DNA from: Heteronotia binoei
Taxonomy: Eukaryota
Direction of reading: 5' to 3'
DNA length: 64,000 nucleotides
NCBI RefSeq assembly: GCF_032191835.1
Contig: NC_083225.1
Span: forward strand, 39,432,001-39,496,000
The notes under the pieces were generated by a model. The model was not told the DNA's origin. It made no database searches and saw only the letters and a list, made by a program, of their open reading frames with translations. This document shows, one piece after another, positions 6,659 through 56,552 of this stretch (the first letter of the stretch is position 1; each line of letters begins with the position of its first letter). The position numbers were made by a program, and so were the translations under genes.

Positions 6659-7060
6659 TAGGGCTGCCAAGCCCCCGGTCCAGGCAGGTGTTCCCCCGCC
6701 CAAGAGGCTCCCAACCCACCAGCCCACATTGGACCGGTAGGGGGAACCTCCCCCAACGTCACCAGCACAACGCTGTCACCAAGATGTGACATCATCGTGC
6801 CGGTGCACAGTGGCTACTCTAGGCATGTTTTTTCCTGGATGCTCTAGCCATTTGGATGGGAAAACTCTATGGTACAATAGGTACCATAGAGTTTTTCCCT
6901 CCCAAATGGCTAAAGCATCTGGGAAAACAATAGAGTTTTACCGGAAACACCTAGAGCGGCTGCACACGACATCATCTGCGTGATGACATTCCGGGTGATG
7001 TCATTGTGTCACATGCACGCACGTCCCTCACTGGAGAATGTAGAGGATTTGGCAACCCTA
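6659..7060. mobile_element. hAT-type MITE, TAGGGTTGCCA family
   Basis: TAGGGCTGCCA...TGGCAACCCTA; TSD GCCCAATT / GCCCAAAT. Confidence 0.85.
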
Positions 7061-18060: not shown

Positions 18061-18352
18061 TAGGGTTCCAGGGCCTGGGGGAACAGAGATGGTCGACAGG
18101 GGGAGCCCTGCCCCTGAAGAGCTCCACTATTGCCCGACATGCCCAACATGATGACATCATCCGGAAGTGGTGTCATCATGCAGGGGAGGCTCCGGCATTT
18201 GGGTTAAAAACTCTTTGGTGCCCTAGAGTTTTTACCCATATCCTAGAGCATCCTACGTGACGTGCCTACCCAATGATGTCACTTCCGGGTTACATCATAG
18301 CATGTGCAAAAAAAGTCCCCTGCCAGCAGCAATGTAAGACCTGGCAACCCTA
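18061..18352. mobile_element. hAT-type MITE, TAGGGTTGCCA family
   Basis: Perfect 8-bp TSD TAGATAAT on both sides. Confidence 0.85.
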
Positions 18353-18450: not shown

Positions 18451-18642
18451 CAGTGTTCCCTCTAAGCTGAGTTAGTAGGAGCTAGCTCAGTTTTTTAGCC
18501 TCCAGCTCACATGTTTTTGTCTTAGCTCAGGAAAAATGGGCCCAGATCAAGCTAATTTATGCAGTAGCTCGCAACTTTAATGCTAGTAGCTCACAAAGTA
18601 GAATTTCTGCTCACAAGACTCCACAGCTTAGAGGGAACATTG
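18451..18642. mobile_element. hAT-type MITE, CAGTGTTCCCTCTAAGCTG family
   Basis: TIRs and perfect TSD GGCATGAT. Confidence 0.9.
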
Positions 18643-18749: not shown

Positions 18750-19719
18750 TTTAAAACAATGCTATGCTGCCTTTCCAACCAAATAGAGTCTGCACAGTGG
18801 CAAACATCATAATATATTAAATAAACAATTCAGTAAAACCAAATAAACACACAAAAACACACAACACAATAAGGAGAGAGGGCCAATAATAGTTACTAGC
18901 AGTACACCAGACAAACAAAAAAAATCTTCAACCACTGGCAGAAGACAACAGTGGAAGGAGAAAGGCATATCTCCCTAGGGAGGTAGTTCTAAAATTTTGG
19001 TGTCACAGCTGTAGAAAGCCCTTTCTTGCGCTGCCACCCATCTGGACTCAGATGGCAGGGTAGCCAAAGCAGGGCCTCTGAGATGACCTAAGTGAGCAGG
19101 CAGGTTCATAATGTATATTAATGTGTATTGTGGTCCTTAATGTATATTGGTCTCTGGCTGCACAGGACTTTAAAGGTGAACATAAACTCCTTGAATTGAG
19201 CCTGGAAGCAAACTAGAAACCAATCTGGACTGATGTGGTCCCTAAAACCCACTCCAGTCAACACTCTGGGCATAGCATTCTGTATCAGTTGTAGTTTCCC
19301 AACAGTCTTCAAGAATAGCCCCAAGTAGGGCACACTGCAGTAATCTAACCTAGATCTTACCAGGGCATGTATCACAGTGTTGCAGTCTTTCCTACCCAGG
19401 AAGGGCTGCAGCTGGCTCACTAGGAAAAGCTGATAAAAGGTACCCCTGGCACCACTGCCACCTGCTTATCCAACAGGAGTGCTGGTTCCAACACCCCCAA
19501 GCTACAAAAATGTTTGGGGGGAGAGTGCAACCCCATCCATAACAGGGGATATCCCAGTTCCTGGACTAAACCTTCCTCTACCAGAAGCATCTCTGTTTTA
19601 TGGAGATTTCAGTTGATTAGCCTTCATCCATTCCAAAACTTCCTCCAAGCACCCATTCATGGTTGCCGCAACCTCCCTGGAATCTTCTCCAAGAGTGAGA
19701 TAAAACTGAGTGATCTACT
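18750..19719 (-). mobile_element. L2-type LINE 3' fragment (RT C-terminus), right part of a split element
   Basis: Translates to TVIHALVRSRLDYCS and KLQLIQNAMPRVLTG, typical of L2-clade ORF2. Confidence 0.8.
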
Positions 19720-19959
19720 TAGGGTGGCCAGACCGTCCCGGTCTCCCGGGACTTTCCCGGTTCTGGCCCCCAATTCCCGGCTCCCGGGCTGGGTATACCG
19801 GGACCATTAAGAGGTCCCGGTTTAGCCAGCCAGAGAGCCGGGGGCCGCGCGCCCGGGCGGGGAAGGCGGCGAGTGAGGGAGGGAGCGACCCTGCGCACGC
19901 GCAGGGACGCTCCCTCACTCACTCGCCGCCTTCCCCGCCCGCGCACGGGGCCGGGCGGT

Positions 19960-21010
19960 GGCGGCGGAGGCCCGGGAGGGCGTCGGAAAGGCCCGCGGGG
20001 GTCGCTGGAGGCCCTCCAGCGACCCCCGCGGGCCTTTCCGAGGCTTCCCGGGGCTGGAAACCCCCACCCCCCGTCCTCCTCCCCCCGGGAGGGCGTCGGA
20101 AAGGCTCGCGGGGGTCGCTGGAGGCCCTCCAGCGACCCCCGCGGGCCTTTCCGACGCTTCCCAGGGCTGGAAACCCCCACCCCCCGTCCTCCTCCCCCCG
20201 GGAGGACGTCGGAAAGGCCCGCGGGGGTCGCTGGAGGCCCTCCAGCGACCCCCGCGGGCCTTTCCAAGGCTTCCCGGGGCTGGAAACCCCCACCCCCCCG
20301 TCCTCCTCCCCCCGGGAGGCCGTCGGAAAGGCCCGCGGGGGTCGCTGGAGGCCCTCCAGCGACCCCCGCGGGCCTTTCCGAGGCTTCCCGGGGCTGGAAA
20401 CCCCCACCCCCCCCGTCCTCCTCCGCCGGGGAGGGCGTCGGAAAGGCCCGCGGGGGTCGCTGGAGGCCCTCCAGCGACCCCCGCGGGCCTTTCCGAGGCT
20501 TCCCGGGGCTGGAAACCCCCACCCCCCGTCCTCCTCCCTCCGGGAGGACGTCGGAAAGGCCCGCGGGGGTCGCTGGAGGCCCTCCAGCGACCCCCGTGGG
20601 CCTTTCCGAGGCTTCCCGGGGCTGGAAACCCCCACCCCCCCATCCTCCTCCGCCGGGGAGGGCGTCGGAAAGGCCCGCGGGGGTCGCTGGAGGCCCTCCA
20701 GCGACCCCCGCGGGCCTTTCCGAGGCTTCCCGGGGCTGGAAACCCCCACCCCCCGTCCTCCTCCGCCCGGGAGGGCGTCGGAAAGGCCCGCGGGGGTCGC
20801 TGGAGGCCCTCCAGCGACCCCCGCGGGCCTTTCCGACGCTTCCCGGGGCTGGAAACCCCCACCCCCCGTCCTCCTCCGCCCGGGAGGGCGTCGGAAAGGC
20901 CTGCGGTGGTCGCTGGAGGCCCTCCAGCGACCCCCGCGGGCCTTTCCGACGCTTCCCCGGCCTCTACCACCCCCCCCCGTGCTGGCGGAGGCCCGGGAGG
21001 GCATCGGAAA
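19960..21010. repeat. GC-rich tandem array, 9 units of 113-115 bp, each with a ~59-bp palindrome
   Basis: GTCGCTGGAGGCCCTCCAGCGAC begins at 20001, 20114, 20227, 20341, 20456, 20569, 20683, 20796 and 20909. Confidence 0.95.
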
Positions 21011-21102
21011 GGCCTCTCCGCCGCCGCCGGACTCGCCGCCGCTGCCGCCGCCGCTGGACTCGCCGCCGCCGGTAAGGGGGCCGCCGAAAGCGGGGGGGGC
21101 TG

Positions 21103-21306
21103 NNNNNNNNNNNNNNNNNNNNNNNNNNNNNNNNNNNNNNNNNNNNNNNNNNNNNNNNNNNNNNNNNNNNNNNNNNNNNNNNNNNNNNNNNNNNNNNNNN
21201 NNNNNNNNNNNNNNNNNNNNNNNNNNNNNNNNNNNNNNNNNNNNNNNNNNNNNNNNNNNNNNNNNNNNNNNNNNNNNNNNNNNNNNNNNNNNNNNNNNNN
21301 NNNNNN
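21103..21306. other. Assembly gap
   Basis: Run of N. Confidence 1.
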
Positions 21307-21772
21307 GAGTGTTGGACTGGATGGGCCACTGGCCTGATCCAACAGGGCTTCTCTTATGTTCTTATGTGACGCAGAGTGTTGGACTGGATGGGCCACTGGC
21401 CTGATCCAACAGGGCTTCTGTTATGTTCTTATGTGACGCAGAGTGTTGGACTGGATGGGCCACTGGCCTGATCCAACAGGGCTTCTGTTATGTTCTTATG
21501 TGACACAGAGTGTTGGACTGGATGGGCCACTGGCCTGATCCAACAGGGCTTCTCTTATGTTCTTATGTGACGCAGAGTGTTGGACTGGATGGGCCACTGG
21601 CCTGATCCAACAGGGCTTCTCTTATGTTCTTATGTGATGCAGAGTGTTGGACTGGATGGGCCACTGGCCTGATCCAACAGGGCTTCTGTTATGTTCTTAT
21701 GTGACGCAGAGTGTTGGACTGGATGGGCCATTGGCCTGATCCAACATGGCTTCTCTTATGTTCTTATGTGAC
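21307..21772 (+). repeat. Tandem array of at least 7 x 67 bp CR1-type 3' tail
   Basis: GAGTGTTGGACTGGATGGGCCA...TTATGTTCTTATG starts at 21307, 21374, 21441, 21508, 21575, 21642 and 21709. Confidence 0.92.
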
Positions 21773-21840
21773 AATACTGACTTTGGTGGACCCAAGCACT
21801 GATTCAGTGTAAGGGAGCTTTGTGTTTGTGTCTTCTGGTG

Positions 21841-22748
21841 CAATTTTGTTCTCAGATCCTGTATTTACTTCATCAGTATATGGGATAAGGCACTTTCTCA
21901 ACTGTGCTGCATAATGCAGCCTATTTATTTTGTCCTGTTTGCTCTGTTGGCTCTATCTGCGCCACCTTCATCACTTTCGGGGTGCGGATCCCCCAGTGGG
22001 GTGGTCTCCCGACTCCCTCCGCCGGCTGTTTCTGATAGCCCTGCGCCCCCTCTTTCATTTGATATGTGTCCCGTGCGGGTGCCACCCTCCCGCCGGGAGA
22101 TGCAGCAAAATGAGCCCCCTTGAGGCTTATGGCGGCAGGGCTCGGGGGAAGCGAGCTAGACTGCTGTTCTTTTGAGGGGTTATAGAGTGTTTCGAGCCCG
22201 TCCCTGTGGCATCGGTCCCATCGTTGTAGGGCCCAGGGGGCCGGCGCAGCGGCCTGCTGAAGCAGCCTGTCGGTCACTTCCGGGTTCCTGTCCTGCATCT
22301 CGACCTGTGTTATTAGTGACAGGCTGCTTCGGCGGGCCGCTGCGCCGGCCCCCTGGGTCCCACAACGATGAGACCGATGCCACAGGGACGGGCTCGAAAC
22401 ACTCTATAACCCCTCAAAAGAACAGCAGTCTAGCTCGCTTCCCCCGAGCCCTGCCGCCATAAGCCTCAAGGGGGCTCATTTTGCGGCATCTCCCGGCGGG
22501 AGGGTGGCACCCGCACGGGACACATATCAAATGAAAGAGGGGGCGCAGGGCTATCAGAAACAGCCGGCGGAGGGAGTCGGGAGACCACCCCACTGGGGGA
22601 TCCACACCCCGAAAGTGATGAAGGTGGCGCAGATAGAGCCAACAGAGCAAACAGGACAAAATAAATAGGCTGCATTATGCAGCACAGTTGAGAAAGTGCC
22701 TTATCCCATATACTGATGAAGTATATACAGGATTTGAGAACAAAATTG
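21841..22748. repeat. Near-perfect inverted repeat, 431-bp arms, 46-bp spacer
   Basis: 21841-22271 is the reverse complement of 22318-22748; the ORF track shows mirror peptides on the two strands. Confidence 0.95.
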
Positions 22749-22779
22749 TTTCCGGCGGTGATATTTGGGGGATTTTTGG

Positions 22780-23010
22780 GGACGTCACAGGAAGTGCTGT
22801 GAAGTCACTTCCTGTTTCCGGCAGTGGCATTTGGGGGAAATGATGTCATTTGGGGGAAGTGATGTCAGAGGAAGTGATGTCACTTCCCGTTTCCGGCAGG
22901 TGACACGGGGAAATGATGTCACAGGAAGTGGTGTCACTTCCTGCTTCCGGCGGTGGCATGACATCACCGGAAGTGACGTCACCGGAAGTGACGTCACTTC
23001 CTGTTTCCGG
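22780..23010. promoter_or_regulatory. Cluster of GGAAGTGA(C/T)GTCAC (ETS-CRE-like) motifs in the element's subterminal region
   Basis: Two perfect CCGGAAGTGACGTCA copies at 22967-22996 plus several degenerate copies; function not shown. Confidence 0.4.
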
Positions 23011-23097
23011 CGGCGCGCGCGCTTCGCGCGCGCACACCCCTACCTTCCCCCCCCCCCAGGTGTCCCTGGCTGGCCTTCAGACATTATGGTCACCCTA

Positions 23098-23540
23098 GAT
23101 CTACTTTCAAGGTAGGACTGAAACCACTGCAGAACAGCACCTTGCAGTCCCAACCCTGAAAGGCAGGCCAGAAGGATACCATGACTGATGGTATTAAAAG
23201 CCACCAAGTTGTCCAGGAGAATTAACAGGGTCATACTCCCACTGTCCATCTCTTGGTACAGATCATGCACTAAAGTGGCCAAGGCTGCTTCAGTTCCATA
23301 ACCAGGCATGAAAATAAGGTTACACTCCCACTGTCCATCTCTTGATGCAGGTCATCCACCAGGGCAGCCATGGCTATTTCAGTCCAACAACCAGGCTCAT
23401 AACTGGGCCTGAAAGCAGAGTAGCAGATCCAAACAATCCATTTCAATTAGGAATCCTTGAAGATGGCCAGCCACCATTCATTCAGTCACCTTGCTCAAGA
23501 ATGGAACATTTCACAAACAGATACCGACACTCCCTCTTCT
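23098..23540 (-). mobile_element. L2-type LINE RT fragment, left part of the split element
   Basis: Translates to PGYGTEAAL...LLILLDNLVAFNTISHGILL...LQWFQSYLE. Confidence 0.85.
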
Positions 23541-23605: not shown

Positions 23606-24178
23606 TTGGGTTGCCAAGTCCTAGGCCTCCGGCCAGGAAGAGTTTCATGCATGCCAGTGTGATGTCATCACCCAGATGTGACATCTTTGCACCAGGCATG
23701 TCACACATGGGACGCTCTAGCATTTAGGTAAAGAACTCTGTGGTGCCATAGAGTTTTTACCTGAACGCTAGAGCATCCAGTGTGTGATGTGCTTGATGCA
23801 ATGACATCACTTCTAGGTAATGTTATCACACTGAGCATGTCAAGCAGCAATGGAGTTTTGGGGGGTGGGGATCAGTGTTCCCTCTAAGCTGCAGAGTCTT
23901 GTGAGCAAAAGTTCTACTTTGTGAGCTACTGTTATTAAAGTTGTGAGCTACAGGCATTAAAGTTGTGAGGTACTGCATAAATCATTGTGCTCCGGGGTCA
24001 TCCTTCCTGAGCTAAGACAAAAATGTGTGAGTTGGAGGCTAAAAAACTGTGAGCTAGCTCACACTAACTCAGAGGGAAAACTGGTGGGGATCCACCCCGC
24101 TGGCCAGCTCCATGCCCATGAGTTGGGGGCCCCCAAACTGCAGGAAAACTCACCCCCAGTGGGAGACTAGAAATCCTA
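23606..24178. mobile_element. hAT-type MITE containing a nested CAGTGTT MITE (23873-24083)
   Basis: Outer TSD TTTGATAG; inner TSD GTGGGGAT. Confidence 0.85.
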
Positions 24179-26187: not shown

Positions 26188-26385
26188 CAGGGCTTTTTTT
26201 GTAGAAAAAGCCCTGCGGGAACTCATTTGCATATTAGGTTCCACCCCCTGACATCACCATTGTTCCACACAGGACTTTTTGTAGAAAAAGCCCAGCAGGA
26301 ACTTATTTGCATATTAGGCCACACACCTTGCCACTAAGTCAGCTGGAACTGCGCTCCTGTGCGTTCCAGCTCAAAAAACGCCCTG
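26188..26385. mobile_element. hAT-type MITE, CAGGGCTTTTT family (dimeric)
   Basis: Perfect TSD GTTCTTAC. Confidence 0.9.
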
Positions 26386-30861: not shown

Positions 30862-31605
30862 GTAGGGATGCGAGCCTCCAGGTGGGACCTGGGGATCCCC
30901 TGGAATTAGGGTTGCCAAGTCCAACTCAGGCAATATCTGTGGACTTTGAGGATGGAGCCAGGAGCAAGGGTGTGACAAGCACGATTGAACTCCAAAAGGA
31001 GTTTTGGCAATCACATTTAAAGAGACCGTGCTCCTTTTAAATGCCTTTCTTCCATAGGAAATAATGGAGGGATAGCAGCATCTTCTTTGGGGGCTCATAG
31101 AATCGGACCCCCTGGTTCATTCTTTTTGAAACTTGGGAAGTGATTTGAGGAGACACGATGGATGCTATGCTGAAATTTTGGTGCTTTTACCTCAAAAAAA
31201 ACCGCCAGCCTCTCTGGATCCCCAGATATCCACAGATCGATTCTCCATTATACCCTATGGGAATCAGTCTCCATAGGGAATAATGAAGTGGCCAGAAGAT
31301 ATTTCCCTCCCCTCCCCCCGCTTTCTGATGACCCTGAAGCAGGGAAAGGACCTCCAAACCAGGGGATCCCCTGCCCCCAACTGGGGATTGGCAACCCTAC
31401 CTGGAATTACAGCTCATAGAGAGATCTGTTCCCCTAGAGAAGATGGTTGCTTTGGAGGATAGTCTTTATGGCACTGTACCCAGCTGAGATCCCTGTCCTT
31501 CCCAGGATCCATTAAAAAAATATCCAGGAGTTTCCCAACCTGGATCTAGAAAGCCTACCTCCATCCCCCACCAGTGGCCAAGGGAGACCTGAAACCCTAA
31601 ATTCA
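30862..31605. mobile_element. MITE containing a nested ~490-bp hAT-type element (30907-31399)
   Basis: Inner TIRs TAGGGTTGCCAA / TTGGCAACCCTA with perfect TSD CCTGGAAT. Confidence 0.85.
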
Positions 31606-34616: not shown

Positions 34617-35719
34617 AATTTCTCCATCTGAGAAAGTCCTAGGCCGGTCATTTTTCTCCCTCTCCCTGGGAAAGGATAGGCCAATATGGGACTCAGAAGG
34701 AGCCAGAGGGACAGCTCTCTGCCCAGCTGGGATGCTAAAGGGACGGGGGGGGGGGGACAGCCAGAATTGATGGGGTATTGAGCTAAGTGTCTTGAAGGTT
34801 ATTATATTTTGGACTTTCTCTAAGGGTTAAAAACTCTTCTAAAAGTTAGCAGAATCCTTCTTTTATTACTCTAATTCTAATATTCACTCAGTTTTCTTTT
34901 AATGGAAACTCAGTTTTCTGACCTGGTTTGTATATGTTTTATTTAGCAACAAAAAAATCTCGGGGGGGGGGGAGTGTTCTAATTCACTGGTTTCTTTTCA
35001 ATCAGTAATGAACTTTTAAAACTGATTTTTGCAGGTAGCTCAGTTAAATAGCATCCTAGTAATAAAATACATAAAGTTCTCTGATGGATTGCTTATTTGG
35101 GAAAGGCTTGTATGGTTCCTGAACACCTGCAGAGCTGCAGTTACGTAGACCACAACAAAGTTCAAAACACCACACAGTTTCTTCAAGGACGCAGGACTGC
35201 TGGGAATCTAAACACAGCATACTGCTTTGGAGGAGTAAACACACAAGCACAACACAATGTCACGGATAGATCTGGACCACAGCCTAGCTTGAAACCCCAC
35301 TTTAGCCAAAGAAGCAATAGATGTCCTTGAACAAGTCAGTCCTACTTAACTTTGGGTGAAGGGACAGGAAACACACCAAGCAAAGCACACCTGATTATAA
35401 ATCCATCTGTGAATTAAAATGGAAAGTTACAGCCTGTTTAATTGTGCAGTTGACTGCAGTTGAAAAGACTGGCAGTTGCCATTTTAAAGACATAATGCCT
35501 ACATTTAGCCTACTTTATATATGCTCCTTTTAGATGTTATGACAAATCTCTCCCTGCCACATGTGCATAGTGTGACAGAAAACTTCCTGTCTTGGAAAGC
35601 CTTCCATTAAACTCTGATTTGCCATGACACTCCAACGCAGGTGCTTGGACACATTTAGGGAGACCTGGGAGACAGAAATGCAGAGCAGCTAGCAGCAGCA
35701 ATGGCATGACATCACTTCC

Positions 35720-36003
35720 AGGAGGAGGAGAATATATTGGATCTATACCCCACCCTTCACTACCGAAAGGAGTCTTAGAGCATTTTACAATCTCCTTTCC
35801 CTTCCCCTCCTCACAACAGACACCTGTGAGGTAGGTGGAGCTAACAGAACTCTCCCGAAACTGTTCTTGAGAGCAACAGCTCTGTGAGAACTTGTGACTG
35901 ACCCAAGATCACATCAGCAGGTGCATGTCGAGAAGTGGGGAATCAAACCCGATTCTCCTAGATAAGAGTGTGCACACTTAACCACTACACCAAATTGGTT
36001 CTC
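35720..36003 (-). mobile_element. Squam3-like SINE
   Basis: Reverse complement of the 308-580 family. Confidence 0.75.
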
Positions 36004-36897
36004 AGACATAATGTCACACGTATCTAGGGGTCACCAGAAACTCTATGGTAAAACCATACATCTTGAAGTCACTCCAGGTTTCCCTAGAAAGTTCTGTCTT
36101 GAAGCCAGGAAAACTCCAGAAGTAATGTCATGCCATCACTAACAGTATTTTTCTTTATTTTTCTTCTGCTGGCACTCGAGTGTAAGTGAGCATATGGCAA
36201 CCCTAGACATATTGGAGCTTATTTACTTGTCACAAGAGAGGATTCTAAACTAGCAATAAACAGCGCTTTAGATTCTAGTTACAGATTCTAGCCTCCGCGT
36301 AGCACCTAGAGTTTCCCCAGAATCACAACTGATCTCCAAACTACAGAGATCAGTTGCCCTGAGAAAGGGAGAGCTTTGGAGGCCGGACTCAATGGCGGGA
36401 GTGGCCAAACTGTGGCTCAGGAGCCACATGTGGCTGTTTCACACATATTGTGTGACTCTCAAAGCCTCCACTGCCCTGCTGGCCAGCTTGGAGAATGCAT
36501 TTAAAGTTGCTTTTTTCCACATTTCCCTCCCTCCCTGGCTCTCAAACCTCTGATGTCCATGTCTTACGGCTCTCAATCATCTGACGTTAATTCCATGTGA
36601 CTCTTACGTTAAGCGAGTCCGGCCATCCCTGCTCTATGGTATGCCATAGATTCCAGGTGAAATCCCTCTCCGAACTCCCCCCTCCACAGGCACTGCCCCC
36701 AAATCCCCAGAATTTCCCAGGCGAGAGCTGGCAACCGTAATTCCATTTTGTGCAGAAGAAACAAATGCCAGGTGCCAACACACCTGCATTCAAAGATCAC
36801 AGCACACTGCAGCGTGACTGAAGACTTCCCAGCCTAGGAAGCTTTCCATTGCACTGTGTGTGAAAGGAACAAGCAGGGAGTACAGAGAGGTTTACTG

Positions 36898-40149: not shown

Positions 40150-40364
40150 NNNNNNNNNNNNNNNNNNNNNNNNNNNNNNNNNNNNNNNNNNNNNNNNNNN
40201 NNNNNNNNNNNNNNNNNNNNNNNNNNNNNNNNNNNNNNNNNNNNNNNNNNNNNNNNNNNNNNNNNNNNNNNNNNNNNNNNNNNNNNNNNNNNNNNNNNNN
40301 NNNNNNNNNNNNNNNNNNNNNNNNNNNNNNNNNNNNNNNNNNNNNNNNNNNNNNNNNNNNNNNN
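40150..40364. other. Assembly gap
   Basis: Run of N. Confidence 1.
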
Positions 40365-46950: not shown

Positions 46951-47339
46951 CCTGCACCAGTAAGCTTATGAAGTTCCACCTTCCAGGTGGTGATCCCCTG
47001 CAACCATGCCCACACACCTGCCACTGTTGATGTTTATAGCAAGAAAAAATGGATCTTATTTGGAAGTGACATCACTTTCAGGATATGCTCTAGGAATCCC
47101 CCCTAGAGACCGGGGGGATTCCTAAAGCATTGTATGGTTATATCACTTCCTGTTCCCAGGCCTTCCCCCAGAAATCTCTCAGGTTTTGCTGGCAGAGGCC
47201 TGCCAGCCCTATCCGTCACACATATTAAAGCAGTAGGCCTCAACCTTTCTGGCTCTAGGACCCGTTAAGCAAGGTATGACCAGTGCCTCAGTCTTTCCAG
47301 ATCCAGGACCCATTAAGCATGGGATGACAAAGTCACGTG

Positions 47340-48479: not shown

Positions 48480-50076
48480 TAGGCTTCCCAACCCTCCCAC
48501 CCTGGCGGGGGACCCCAGGATTTCCAGCCTCTTCCCCGCTCCCCAAAAAAACGGAAGTGGGGGGAGGGGGAAACGGCGCCAAGAAGCGTGGCGAGCCGCC
48601 CCATCTCGGAGCGGGCGACACCGCTGGGCAGCTGCCGCCTCTTCTCCACTTCACCGTAGCTGCTCCTCCGAGATGGGCTCAGGCTGAGCCCATCTCGGAG
48701 GAGCAGCTACGGAGAAGAGGCGGCAGCGCAGTGGCGTCGCCCGCTCCGCTCCGCCTTTGAGGTGAAATCTTGGGGTGAAATTCTCTGAGGTGAAATCTGA
48801 GGTGAATTCTTGGGGGCTCAGGGCTGAATTTGTCAGGCACGGTGTAGGCAGCCCTATGAATGGCAGGAGGGGACCTTTACCCGGGACGGTCGGTCAAGCG
48901 ACTGTTTCCTCTTCCTTCCTGGGGAAGCGTTGGCGCCTCAGAGCCCGGTCGGGCCTTGGCGTTCTCGGAGCACCAATGCATAGTGGACGATGGTAAGACG
49001 TGAGGAGGGAGCTTCTTCTCTCTTCTGAGGATGCCGATTCCCGGGCGGGGCCGATCTCACCTTCCCTCGTCCGCTGCCCAAAGGCAAAATCTCCTGAAAT
49101 CCCGCTGCCTGGGTTTTTTTGGGGGGAGGGGGGCTTGCAGGCGGCTTTTCTGCCTCCCCACCCTCACAAATTCCACCCTGCGTTTTATATACCGCCCTTT
49201 CCCTCTTTAGTCCCTTTGAGGGAGGGCAGCGCATCCTTGATGACTCGGTTCGCACCAAGGGGCAGCGACTGTATGTTCCCTGGGCTAACACCGCTGTGCT
49301 TTTGTGAGAGGAGGCAGAGTCAGGCTCTCAAAGAACAAGTATTCTTATGTTCGAGTATTCGAGGGAGGACGCTGGCTCAGTGGTAGAGCATCTGCTTGGG
49401 AAGCAGAAGGTCCCAGGTTCAATCCCTGGCATCTCCAAAAAAGGGTCCAGGCAAATAGGTGTGAAAAACCTCAGCTTGAGACCCTGGAGAGCCGCTGCCA
49501 GTCTGAGAAGACAATACTGACTTTGATGGACCAAAGGTCTGATTCTGTATAAGGCAGCTTCATATGTTCATATGTTCAAGGGGAGGGTGGAGGCAGGCCA
49601 GGAGCGTGGCAAGCCGCACGTCTGGGTCCTAGAAGGACCCAGATTCGCGGCTCGCCATGCTCCTGGCCTGCCTCCACCCTTCCCTTCTCTGATTTCACCT
49701 CAGAGGCGGAGCGGGTGACGCTGCTGCGCTGCCGCCTCTTCTCCGTAGCTGCTCCTCCGAGATGGGCTCAGCTTGAGCCCATCTCGGAGGAGCAGCTACA
49801 GTGAAGCGGAGAAGAGGCAGCAGCGCAGCGGCGTCGCCCGCTCCACTCCGCCTCTGAGGTGAAATCAGAGAAGGGGAGAGTGGAGGGAAGAAAGGCATTT
49901 AAAAAGGTGTGCCGTCCCTTTAATTGTGATGGACAGAACTCCCTTTGGAGTTCAATTGTGCTTGACACACCCTTGCTCCTAGCTCCACCCCAGTGTCTCC
50001 TGGCTCCACCCCCAAAGTCTCCTGGCTCCACCCCCAAAGTCCCCAGATATTTCTGGAATTGGACTTGGCAACCCTA
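48480..50076. mobile_element. Composite non-autonomous hAT-type element (1.6 kb) with hairpin cassettes and an internal SINE
   Basis: Termini TAGGCTTCCCAA / TTGGCAACCCTA; perfect TSD AGTGTATC. Confidence 0.88.
49364..49578 (+). mobile_element. tRNA-derived SINE, Squam2-like, little diverged
   Basis: GGCTCAGTGGTAGAGCA A box, GGTTCAATCCC B box and (TTCATATG)n tail. Confidence 0.85.
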
Positions 50077-55442: not shown

Positions 55443-55961
55443 TAGGCTTCCCAATCCCCAGGTCCCAGCTGGGGATCCCCCGGTTTTACAGGCTTCCCCC
55501 CTCCCCCAGCCAGCTGGCTGGCGGGGGAAGCCCCACCTCCACAGCCATTATGCACCTCCATGAACAATTCCCATAAAGAATGATGGGGAATTGATCCGCG
55601 GGTATCGGGGGCTCTGGGGGGGCTGTTTTTTGAGGTAGAGGTGCCAAATTTTCAGTATAGCATCCAGTGCCTCTTCCCAAAATGCCCCCCAAGTTTCAAA
55701 AGTATTGGACCAGGGGGTCCAATTCTACGAGCCCCAAAAGAAGGTGCCCCTATCCTTCATTATTTTCTATGGAAGGAAGGCATTTTAAAAGGTGTGCTGT
55801 CCCTTTAAATGTGATGGCCAGAACTCCCTTGGAGTTCAATTCTGCTTGTCACACCCGTGCTCCTGGCTCTGCCCCCAATGTCTCCTGGCTCCACCCCCAA
55901 AGTCTCCTGGCCCCACCCCCAAAGTCCCCAGATATTTCTTGAATTGGACTTGGCAACCCTA
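55443..55961. mobile_element. hAT-type element, short member of the TAGGCTTCCCAA family
   Basis: Perfect TSD ATCTTTCA; ends shared with 48480-50076. Confidence 0.88.
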
Positions 55962-56436: not shown

Positions 56437-56552
56437 CAGGGCTTTTTTGTAGAAAAAGCCCAGCAGGAATGCATTTGCAGATTAGGCCACACCCCCAACA
56501 CCAAGCCAGCCAGAACTGTGTTCCTGTGCGTTCCTGCTCAATAAAAGCCCTG
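56437..56552. mobile_element. hAT-type MITE, CAGGGCTTTTT family (monomeric)
   Basis: Perfect TSD CCTTTGTT. Confidence 0.9.

Follow-up and report, generated by a model that had tools for sequence, protein, structure and literature searches.

The 64,000-nucleotide window analysed here (Heteronotia binoei, NCBI RefSeq assembly GCF_032191835.1, contig NC_083225.1, positions 39,432,001 to 39,496,000 of the forward strand) contains, at window positions 19712–23105, a mobile element with the ends of a hAT-superfamily DNA transposon and an interior built of repeats. An exact 8-bp target-site duplication, GATCTACT, encloses 3,378 positions, a 204-N assembly gap counted in, which begin and end with 11-bp terminal inverted repeats (TIRs), and the whole insert lies within a fragment of a non-long-terminal-repeat (non-LTR) reverse transcriptase. 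From left to right, the interior consists of a GC-rich palindrome, a minisatellite of 113-bp units, the gap, an array of retroposon 3′ tails, the tail piece of a tRNA-type short interspersed nuclear element (SINE), a long inverted repeat with 431-nt arms, and a CpG-rich block of ETS-core plus cAMP response element (CRE)-like repeats. The best explanation, to which we give a probability of roughly three in four, is that this is one copy of a multi-copy, non-autonomous hAT-superfamily transposon that carries inherited filler.

Ends and target-site duplication

The left TIR, TAGGGTGGCCA, and the right TIR, which reads TAGGGTGACCA in reverse complement, are complementary at 10 of 11 positions with 1 mismatch. 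The preliminary description, made from the letters alone, had proposed these TIRs and the exact duplication, and re-reading of 19712–19730 and 23087–23105 bears both out. TAGGG at both TIRs satisfies the terminal motif YARNG, the rule given for hAT ends (PMC3014272). A window-wide scan free of prior assumptions looks for exact 8-bp direct repeats around an 11-bp inverted repeat, with at most 1 mismatch and at most 6 kb between the ends, and finds 9 such end-plus-duplication configurations against a mean of 0.05 in 40 block shuffles; most of the 9 begin CAGTG, CAGGG or TAGGG, which is the YARNG pattern of hAT ends. When the end match is relaxed, the window contains seven TAGG-type elements with 8-bp duplications, among which the element at 19712–23105 is by far the longest, and its left TIR has TAGGGT..CCA in common with the others. 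The ends are thus those of a group for which 8-bp duplications are demonstrated in this genome, and this TAGG-type, hAT-like group is dense in the window.

Immediately inside the TIRs, each end carries its own short repeat. The 100 bp next to the left end contain 8 sites of the left subterminal motif TCCCGG/CCGGGA, where shuffles give an expectation of 0.18, and the 350 bp next to the right end contain 7 sites of the right motif TTCCGG/CCGGAA, where 0.23 is expected. Transposase-binding sites in hAT elements are usually arranged as short subterminal repeats of this kind. The 11-bp TAGGGTG(G/A)CCA ends would be recognised, together with these repeats (left TCCCGG, right TTCCGG), by a transposase encoded at another locus, which would excise the element and paste it into a staggered 8-bp cut, producing the GATCTACT duplication. 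As had been noted earlier, the known letters of the element contain no transposase-like open reading frame (ORF), with the exception that the gap at 21103–21306 could hide sequence. The long ORFs all run through the minisatellite, and the ORFs inside the element derive from repeats, with no coding fragment recognised among them. For the 125-aa ORF of the hairpin, the ESM Atlas gives no usable look-alike, and an exact-protein look-up of the 81-aa hairpin ORF returns no record.

Modules of the interior

The minisatellite, tail array, SINE-tail piece, 431-bp-arm hairpin and ETS-CRE repeats of the preliminary description are all present at measured coordinates (Table 1). The arms of the long inverted repeat are 98% complementary, with 9 mismatch positions between them, and as single-stranded DNA the repeat has a predicted fold of −604 kcal/mol (z = −72). 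Between the arms and the ends of the element lie 349 bp on the right and 2.1 kb on the left, so that the long inverted repeat is internal and its arms are not the termini, as those of a foldback element would be. To the right of the hairpin, nine GGAAGTGAYGTCAC-like sites fall within 22799–23001, against 0.02 expected.

The tRNA-type SINE that matches the 71-bp tail piece is present whole elsewhere in the window, at about 49365–49575, and in a blastn comparison of the element with the rest of the window the SINE tail is the sole match. An Rfam search over 19400–23400 returns only microRNA-like matches on the GC palindromes, all under gathering scores, which we take as chance. Beside the gap, the GCC-rich stretch at 21018–21085, with Ala/Gly codons and a terminal GGTAAG, resembles a first exon with its splice donor and may be a captured gene start.

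Table 1. Positions of the element, its modules, its flanks, related elements of the window and matching contigs from public sequencing runs
Feature	Positions	Strand	Remarks
Reverse-transcriptase fragment (non-LTR), C-terminal part	19121–19711	−	residues 680–865 of P0006
Left flank against P0006, first match	from 19711 downward		residues 680–717, starts TQFYL
Left flank against P0006, further on			residues 755–865
Target-site duplication, copy 1	19712–19719		GATCTACT
Left TIR	19720–19730	+	TAGGGTGGCCA
Left subterminal region	19731–19850	+	TCCCGG/CCGGGA repeats, 8 sites
GC-rich palindrome	19851–19945		CpG observed/expected 0.97
Minisatellite, 113 bp × 8.7	19971–20957	+	96% matches; each unit with its own palindrome, arms ~30 nt
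Diverged end of last 113-bp unit, repeat of pre-array motif, GCC-rich stretch	20958–21102	+	ends GGTAAG
Assembly gap	21103–21306		204 N
Array of very abundant retroposon 3′ tail, 67 bp × 7.0	21307–21772	+	97% matches; octamer-type microsatellite at end
3′ tail piece of tRNA-type SINE	21770–21840	+	71 bp
Long inverted repeat, left arm	21841–22271	+	431 nt
Hairpin spacer	22272–22317	+	46 nt
Long inverted repeat, right arm	22318–22748	+	431 nt
ETS/CRE block	22749–23013	+	GGAAGTGAYGTCAC (ETS-core plus CRE-like) repeats and TTCCGG repeats
Right subterminal GC-rich stretch	23014–23086	+	(CG)n run and C-run
Right TIR	23087–23097	−	TAGGGTGACCA in reverse complement
Target-site duplication, copy 2	23098–23105		GATCTACT
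Reverse-transcriptase fragment, N-terminal part	23106–23510	−	up to residue 624 of P0006
Right flank against P0006			residues 554–624, ends WFQSYLESR
Other TAGG-type elements with 8-bp duplications	6659–7060, 18061–18352, 30907–31399, 35656–36205, 48480–50076, 55443–55961		292–1597 bp
Contig, left end	19723–19839		2 differences
Contig, left end to palindrome	19781–19903		about 7 differences, with gaps
Contig of another run, array end and beyond	20908–21027		about 91% identity
Contig, SINE tail to left arm junction	21801–21895		0 differences
Contigs of two runs, hairpin spacer and inner arms	22201–22281, 22263–22357, 22282–22388		1–3 differences each
Contig, right arm	22344–22723		1 difference in 380
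Contig, right arm into ETS/CRE block	22367–22881		3 differences in 515
Contig, right arm end into ETS/CRE block	22694–22858		0 differences
Contig, ETS/CRE block	22907–23032		1 difference
Contig, right subterminal region	23003–23085		5 differences

Other copies in public sequencing runs

Part of 21770–23300 is contained in fifteen public sequencing runs. Four runs were compared with 19500–23300 at a likeness of at least 90%: two RNA contig sets, one small run of presumed DNA kind and one raw RNA read set. The unique flanks, 19500–19626 and 23183–23300, have essentially zero depth in all four, and a listing of sequencing runs for the unique left flank is empty. In these runs, k-mer depth ranges from tens to thousands over the left end, the hairpin arm and the ETS/CRE block, and the arm depth of 63 in the 10.6-million-letter run (the one of presumed DNA kind) is more than a single-copy locus could reach. 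The element is a member of a multi-copy family, which appears abundant, and its internal junctions are common to other copies. Contigs from the runs follow it in pieces from the left end to the right subterminal region (Table 1); the left-end contig begins 3 nt inside the terminus, the point at which divergence is expected between copies that have different flanks. One contig links 19848 directly to 22433 and, by its sequence, looks like a deletion derivative with both ends. In other copies the retroposon 3′ end is marked by loose ends at 21764–21769.

The hairpin is ancestral in the family. Three of the nine arm mismatches (22228, 22255 and 22371) are private to this copy, and all other copies have the base that restores pairing; the family hairpin was therefore perfect at these positions and this copy has drifted since. 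An assembly fold-back as the origin of the hairpin is ruled out by the same private mismatches, with pairing restored in other copies, and by independent contigs that cross the spacer and both outer junctions. A viral origin of the hairpin was considered since metatranscriptomic and faecal runs contain it, and was dropped because the same runs have host SINE tails at huge depth and because exact-pattern scans with hairpin and left-end words find none in viral contigs; the same scans find none in metagenome contigs.

As opposed to the hairpin, the 113-bp array seems to be mostly local. Its internal units have a depth of 0 to 2.5 in the four runs, whereas the arrangement of last unit plus downstream sequence has a depth of 11–21 in the same runs. 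The array is bordered by a repeat of the motif GGCGGAGGCCCGGGAGGGCRTCGGAAAGGCC, which would allow expansion by unequal exchange, and it is best read as a local, or few-copy, expansion of a segment that the family carries once. After the insertion or shortly ahead of it, a palindrome segment flanked by this short direct repeat would have grown, through slippage or unequal exchange, to become the 113-bp array. The earlier proposal that the element moves satellites and hairpins as one package consequently stands in part: the hairpin, the ETS/CRE block and the SINE-tail-to-hairpin junction are found in other copies, but the internal units of the 113-bp array are almost absent from the four runs. 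For the 67-bp tail, which reaches a depth of up to about 10^5, the abundance is too high to show whether the array is common to copies.

Retroposon-tail arrays also occur away from the element. In contigs or reads of all four runs, position 21830 is joined to 21770, with 9 letters added, and the SINE 3′ tail (21770–21830) thus forms tandem arrays of roughly 70 bp at other places; the presence of this junction in all four runs indicates that such arrays are widespread in the genome. A second tail-to-tail junction, of the 67-bp tail and with different joining letters, is likewise present in runs.

The near absence of the internal 113-bp units from other runs would suit a short hAT miniature inverted-repeat transposable element (MITE) that swelled in place, with only the ends having moved and with tails, hairpin and arrays formed at the locus itself through duplication and nested retroposition. 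Nesting is typical of retroposon tails, and the other TAGG-type elements of the window are mostly 300–550 bp long, as such a MITE would be. This account is nevertheless unlikely, given that the tail-to-arm, arm-to-spacer and arm-to-ETS/CRE junctions are spanned at 99–100% identity in runs that lack the unique flanks, that arm mismatches are private to this copy, and that the two retroposon tails are CpG-poor (observed/expected 0.14 and 0). The CpG-poor tails resemble old methylated repeats, which suggests their capture as pre-existing genomic DNA. If the interior is instead inherited, as we favour, the GC-rich palindromic segment, the retroposon tails, the 431-nt-arm palindrome and the CpG-rich ETS/CRE block would be filler acquired in an ancestor copy and then passed on, with entry most likely by template switching during gap repair after excision.

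Flanking reverse-transcriptase fragment

The two flanks of the element form one colinear RVT_1-type fragment on the minus strand, which the element interrupts. A full HMMER search with the right-flank peptide gives thousands of relatives, among them P0006, a protein of 960 aa whose residues 507–734 match Pfam RVT_1 and to which both flanks align (Table 1). A direct Pfam search of three flank peptides gives no match, and in the ESM Atlas the C-terminal piece of the flank has only a 0.85 lead. Within the fragment to the right of the element lies a local tandem duplication of ~90 bp (23303–23395 against about 23214–23306), in which PGCWTEIAMAALVDDL... stands beside PGYGTEAALATLVHDL..., with 65% protein identity.

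Evidence that weighs against an inherited hAT element

Several observations, collected here, weigh against the reading of one copy of an inherited hAT family, and some of them would fit other explanations. The first concerns the target. Residues 625–679 of P0006 (55 aa, about 165 bp, including the PQGS and YADD motifs) are missing exactly at the insertion and are not found elsewhere in the window, and the break in the fragment coincides with the outer border of the left copy of the duplication, 19711/19712. A simple insertion does not predict this loss, and the chance of landing within about 8 bp of an existing break in a ~1.3-kb fragment is roughly 1 in 80. The deletion may be a coincidence, the trace of an earlier insertion that was imprecisely excised from the same 8-bp site, or the result of a non-canonical event. 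Where the preliminary description had the element splitting an L2 fragment, the element does lie inside one colinear non-LTR reverse-transcriptase fragment, but 55 residues of that fragment are missing at the insertion point. It is improbable that the locus records a currently or very recently active cargo hAT family which spreads, in many copies, the near-perfect 0.9-kb palindrome with the CpG-rich ETS/CRE block and whose insertion is mechanistically linked to the ~165-bp target loss beside an intact duplication; if this were so, the loss would reflect repeated use of a hot-spot site after imprecise excision, or non-canonical integration.

The target itself is also atypical, as neither GATCTACT nor its complement AGTAGATC fits the common hAT target preference nTnnnnAn, although this is a single site and the preference is a statistical tendency. 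The search for an autonomous partner or a transposase, which covered the 64-kb window, found neither, and no second full copy with a different duplication is directly observed. The four runs carry three coded organism labels, and copies of the same and of other species are not separable among them.

The two ends might, in addition, have partly separate histories, since in run X1 (RNA) the right half is present and the left end absent, and in run X5 the depths of the two ends are 3–5 fold apart. These depth patterns, the unlike subterminal repeats (TCCCGG and TTCCGG) and the one-position difference between the ends would all be expected if two hAT elements had contributed one end each, left and right, and these had moved together with everything between them. 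We consider such a composite of two elements quite improbable: it is normal in hAT elements for the two subterminal regions to be unlike, the element contains no internal TAGG-type termini, and its left subterminal region is joined to the right arm in one contig.

The assembly gap is crossed by no read or contig in the four runs. A mid-element gap of estimated length that no read crosses leaves room for an artefact, be it a chance end match, a scaffold misjoin of two elements across the gap or a fold-back of the hairpin. On its two sides, however, the gap has identical 8-bp copies, matching ends, and flanks that share one strand and follow each other in order as parts of a single colinear reverse-transcriptase fragment; chance would give 0.05 configurations per window, and the hairpin spacer and both outer junctions are present in independent runs. 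An artefact is therefore very improbable, and the matched ends and colinear flanks tie the two gap sides, indirectly, to one insertion. The window has a second assembly gap, of 215 N, at 40150–40364.

Age and possible consequences

The closest contigs of other runs diverge from the element by about 0.3–1%, and the CpG observed/expected ratio is 0.6–0.97 in its GC-rich modules, against 0.04–0.11 in the flanks. Taken together with the perfect duplication and the one-base difference between the ends, this divergence and the kept CpG suggest that the insertion is fairly young. The description of a young non-autonomous DNA transposon of hAT type, offered before this analysis, agrees with these values, as it does with the 8-bp duplication, the YARNG ends, the subterminal repeats and the non-coding content of the known letters.

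Replication can stall and chromosomes can break at long near-perfect palindromes and GC-rich arrays, and ETS/CRE blocks rich in CpG can serve as promoters. The element is a clear case, open to dating, in which a vertebrate DNA transposon has brought structure-forming and promoter-like DNA to a new site, and its ETS/CRE block may have promoter activity. A family that scatters palindromes and ETS/CRE blocks could shape genome stability and gene regulation.

Comparison with known systems

Within the window, the closest likeness is to the TAGGGTTGCCA-type hAT-like MITEs, which also have terminal TAGGGT..CCA and 8-bp duplications. They differ in that their ends are unalignable with those of the element beyond about 11 nt, their interior similarity is limited to the SINE tail, and they are 0.3–1.6 kb long. 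Another 'loaded' hAT-like element is the 1.6-kb TAGG-type element at 48480–50076, with an exact AGTGTATC duplication, a whole tRNA-type SINE and several GC-rich palindromes. Four small MITEs (18451–18642, 23873–24083, 26188–26385 and 56437–56552) represent two further hAT-like groups. Their ends are CAGTGTTCCCT and CAGGGCTTTTT, their 8-bp duplications are exact, and a pair of them flanks the element, one on each side, at a distance of about 1 kb or less. A possible relative of the right end is found at 47040–47213, with GGAAGTGACATCAC, a GGGGGAAGG run and the terminus TAGGGCTGGCAGG in reverse complement, for which no partner end or duplication was found. A literal search of papers for the end sequence of the element returns only unrelated primer matches.

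Other mobile elements are also known to carry tandem arrays. The Tetris foldback element of Drosophila virilis (PMC4079207) and the Helentron-borne satellite-like arrays of the Pacific oyster (PMC7492417) both hold tandem arrays inside a mobile element that can spread them to new loci. Tetris and the Helentrons belong to other superfamilies (foldback and Helitron-like) than the hAT-type element here, and the Tetris repeats form part of a long terminal structure, whereas the long inverted repeat of the present element is internal and its main array seemingly local. Similar to this element, the Pack-TYPE transposons of plants (PMC8903248) are non-autonomous, with inverted ends and captured foreign DNA inside; they are defined in that survey of plants by captured gene fragments, whereas no coding fragment is recognised here.

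The hAT families of Anolis carolinensis described by Novick and colleagues all have 8-bp duplications and YARNG ends (PMC3014272). One of them, hobo_AC, has 11-bp ends TAGGCTTGMTC and is the source of 15 non-autonomous families (hobo-N1 to N15), 1.3–3.4 kb long, whose centres are co-amplified filler with Penelope, CR1, SINE and Chapaev fragments and whose divergence from consensus is about 0.3–1.2% (PMC3014272). A text search of the same paper finds no mention of hairpins, palindromes or tandem repeats (PMC3014272). The ends differ, with TAGGGTGRCCA here and TAGGCTTGMTC or TAGGCTTGAGC there, so that they have nothing in common but TAGG, one later T and an 11-bp length, and the element is thus not a member of those families; the hobo_AC target consensus NTRNNYAN (PMC3014272) is likewise not matched by GATCTACT. 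As with the hobo-N families, which form a near precedent, the element combines an 8-bp duplication, 11-bp ends that start with TAGG, absence of an ORF, kilobase-scale length, filler with retroposon pieces and low divergence (PMC3014272). The principle, that lizard hAT elements acquire and amplify foreign DNA, is already published. The locus is of value for the cataloguing of its family and for the odd target deletion, the one feature that merits follow-up, rather than for a new mechanism.

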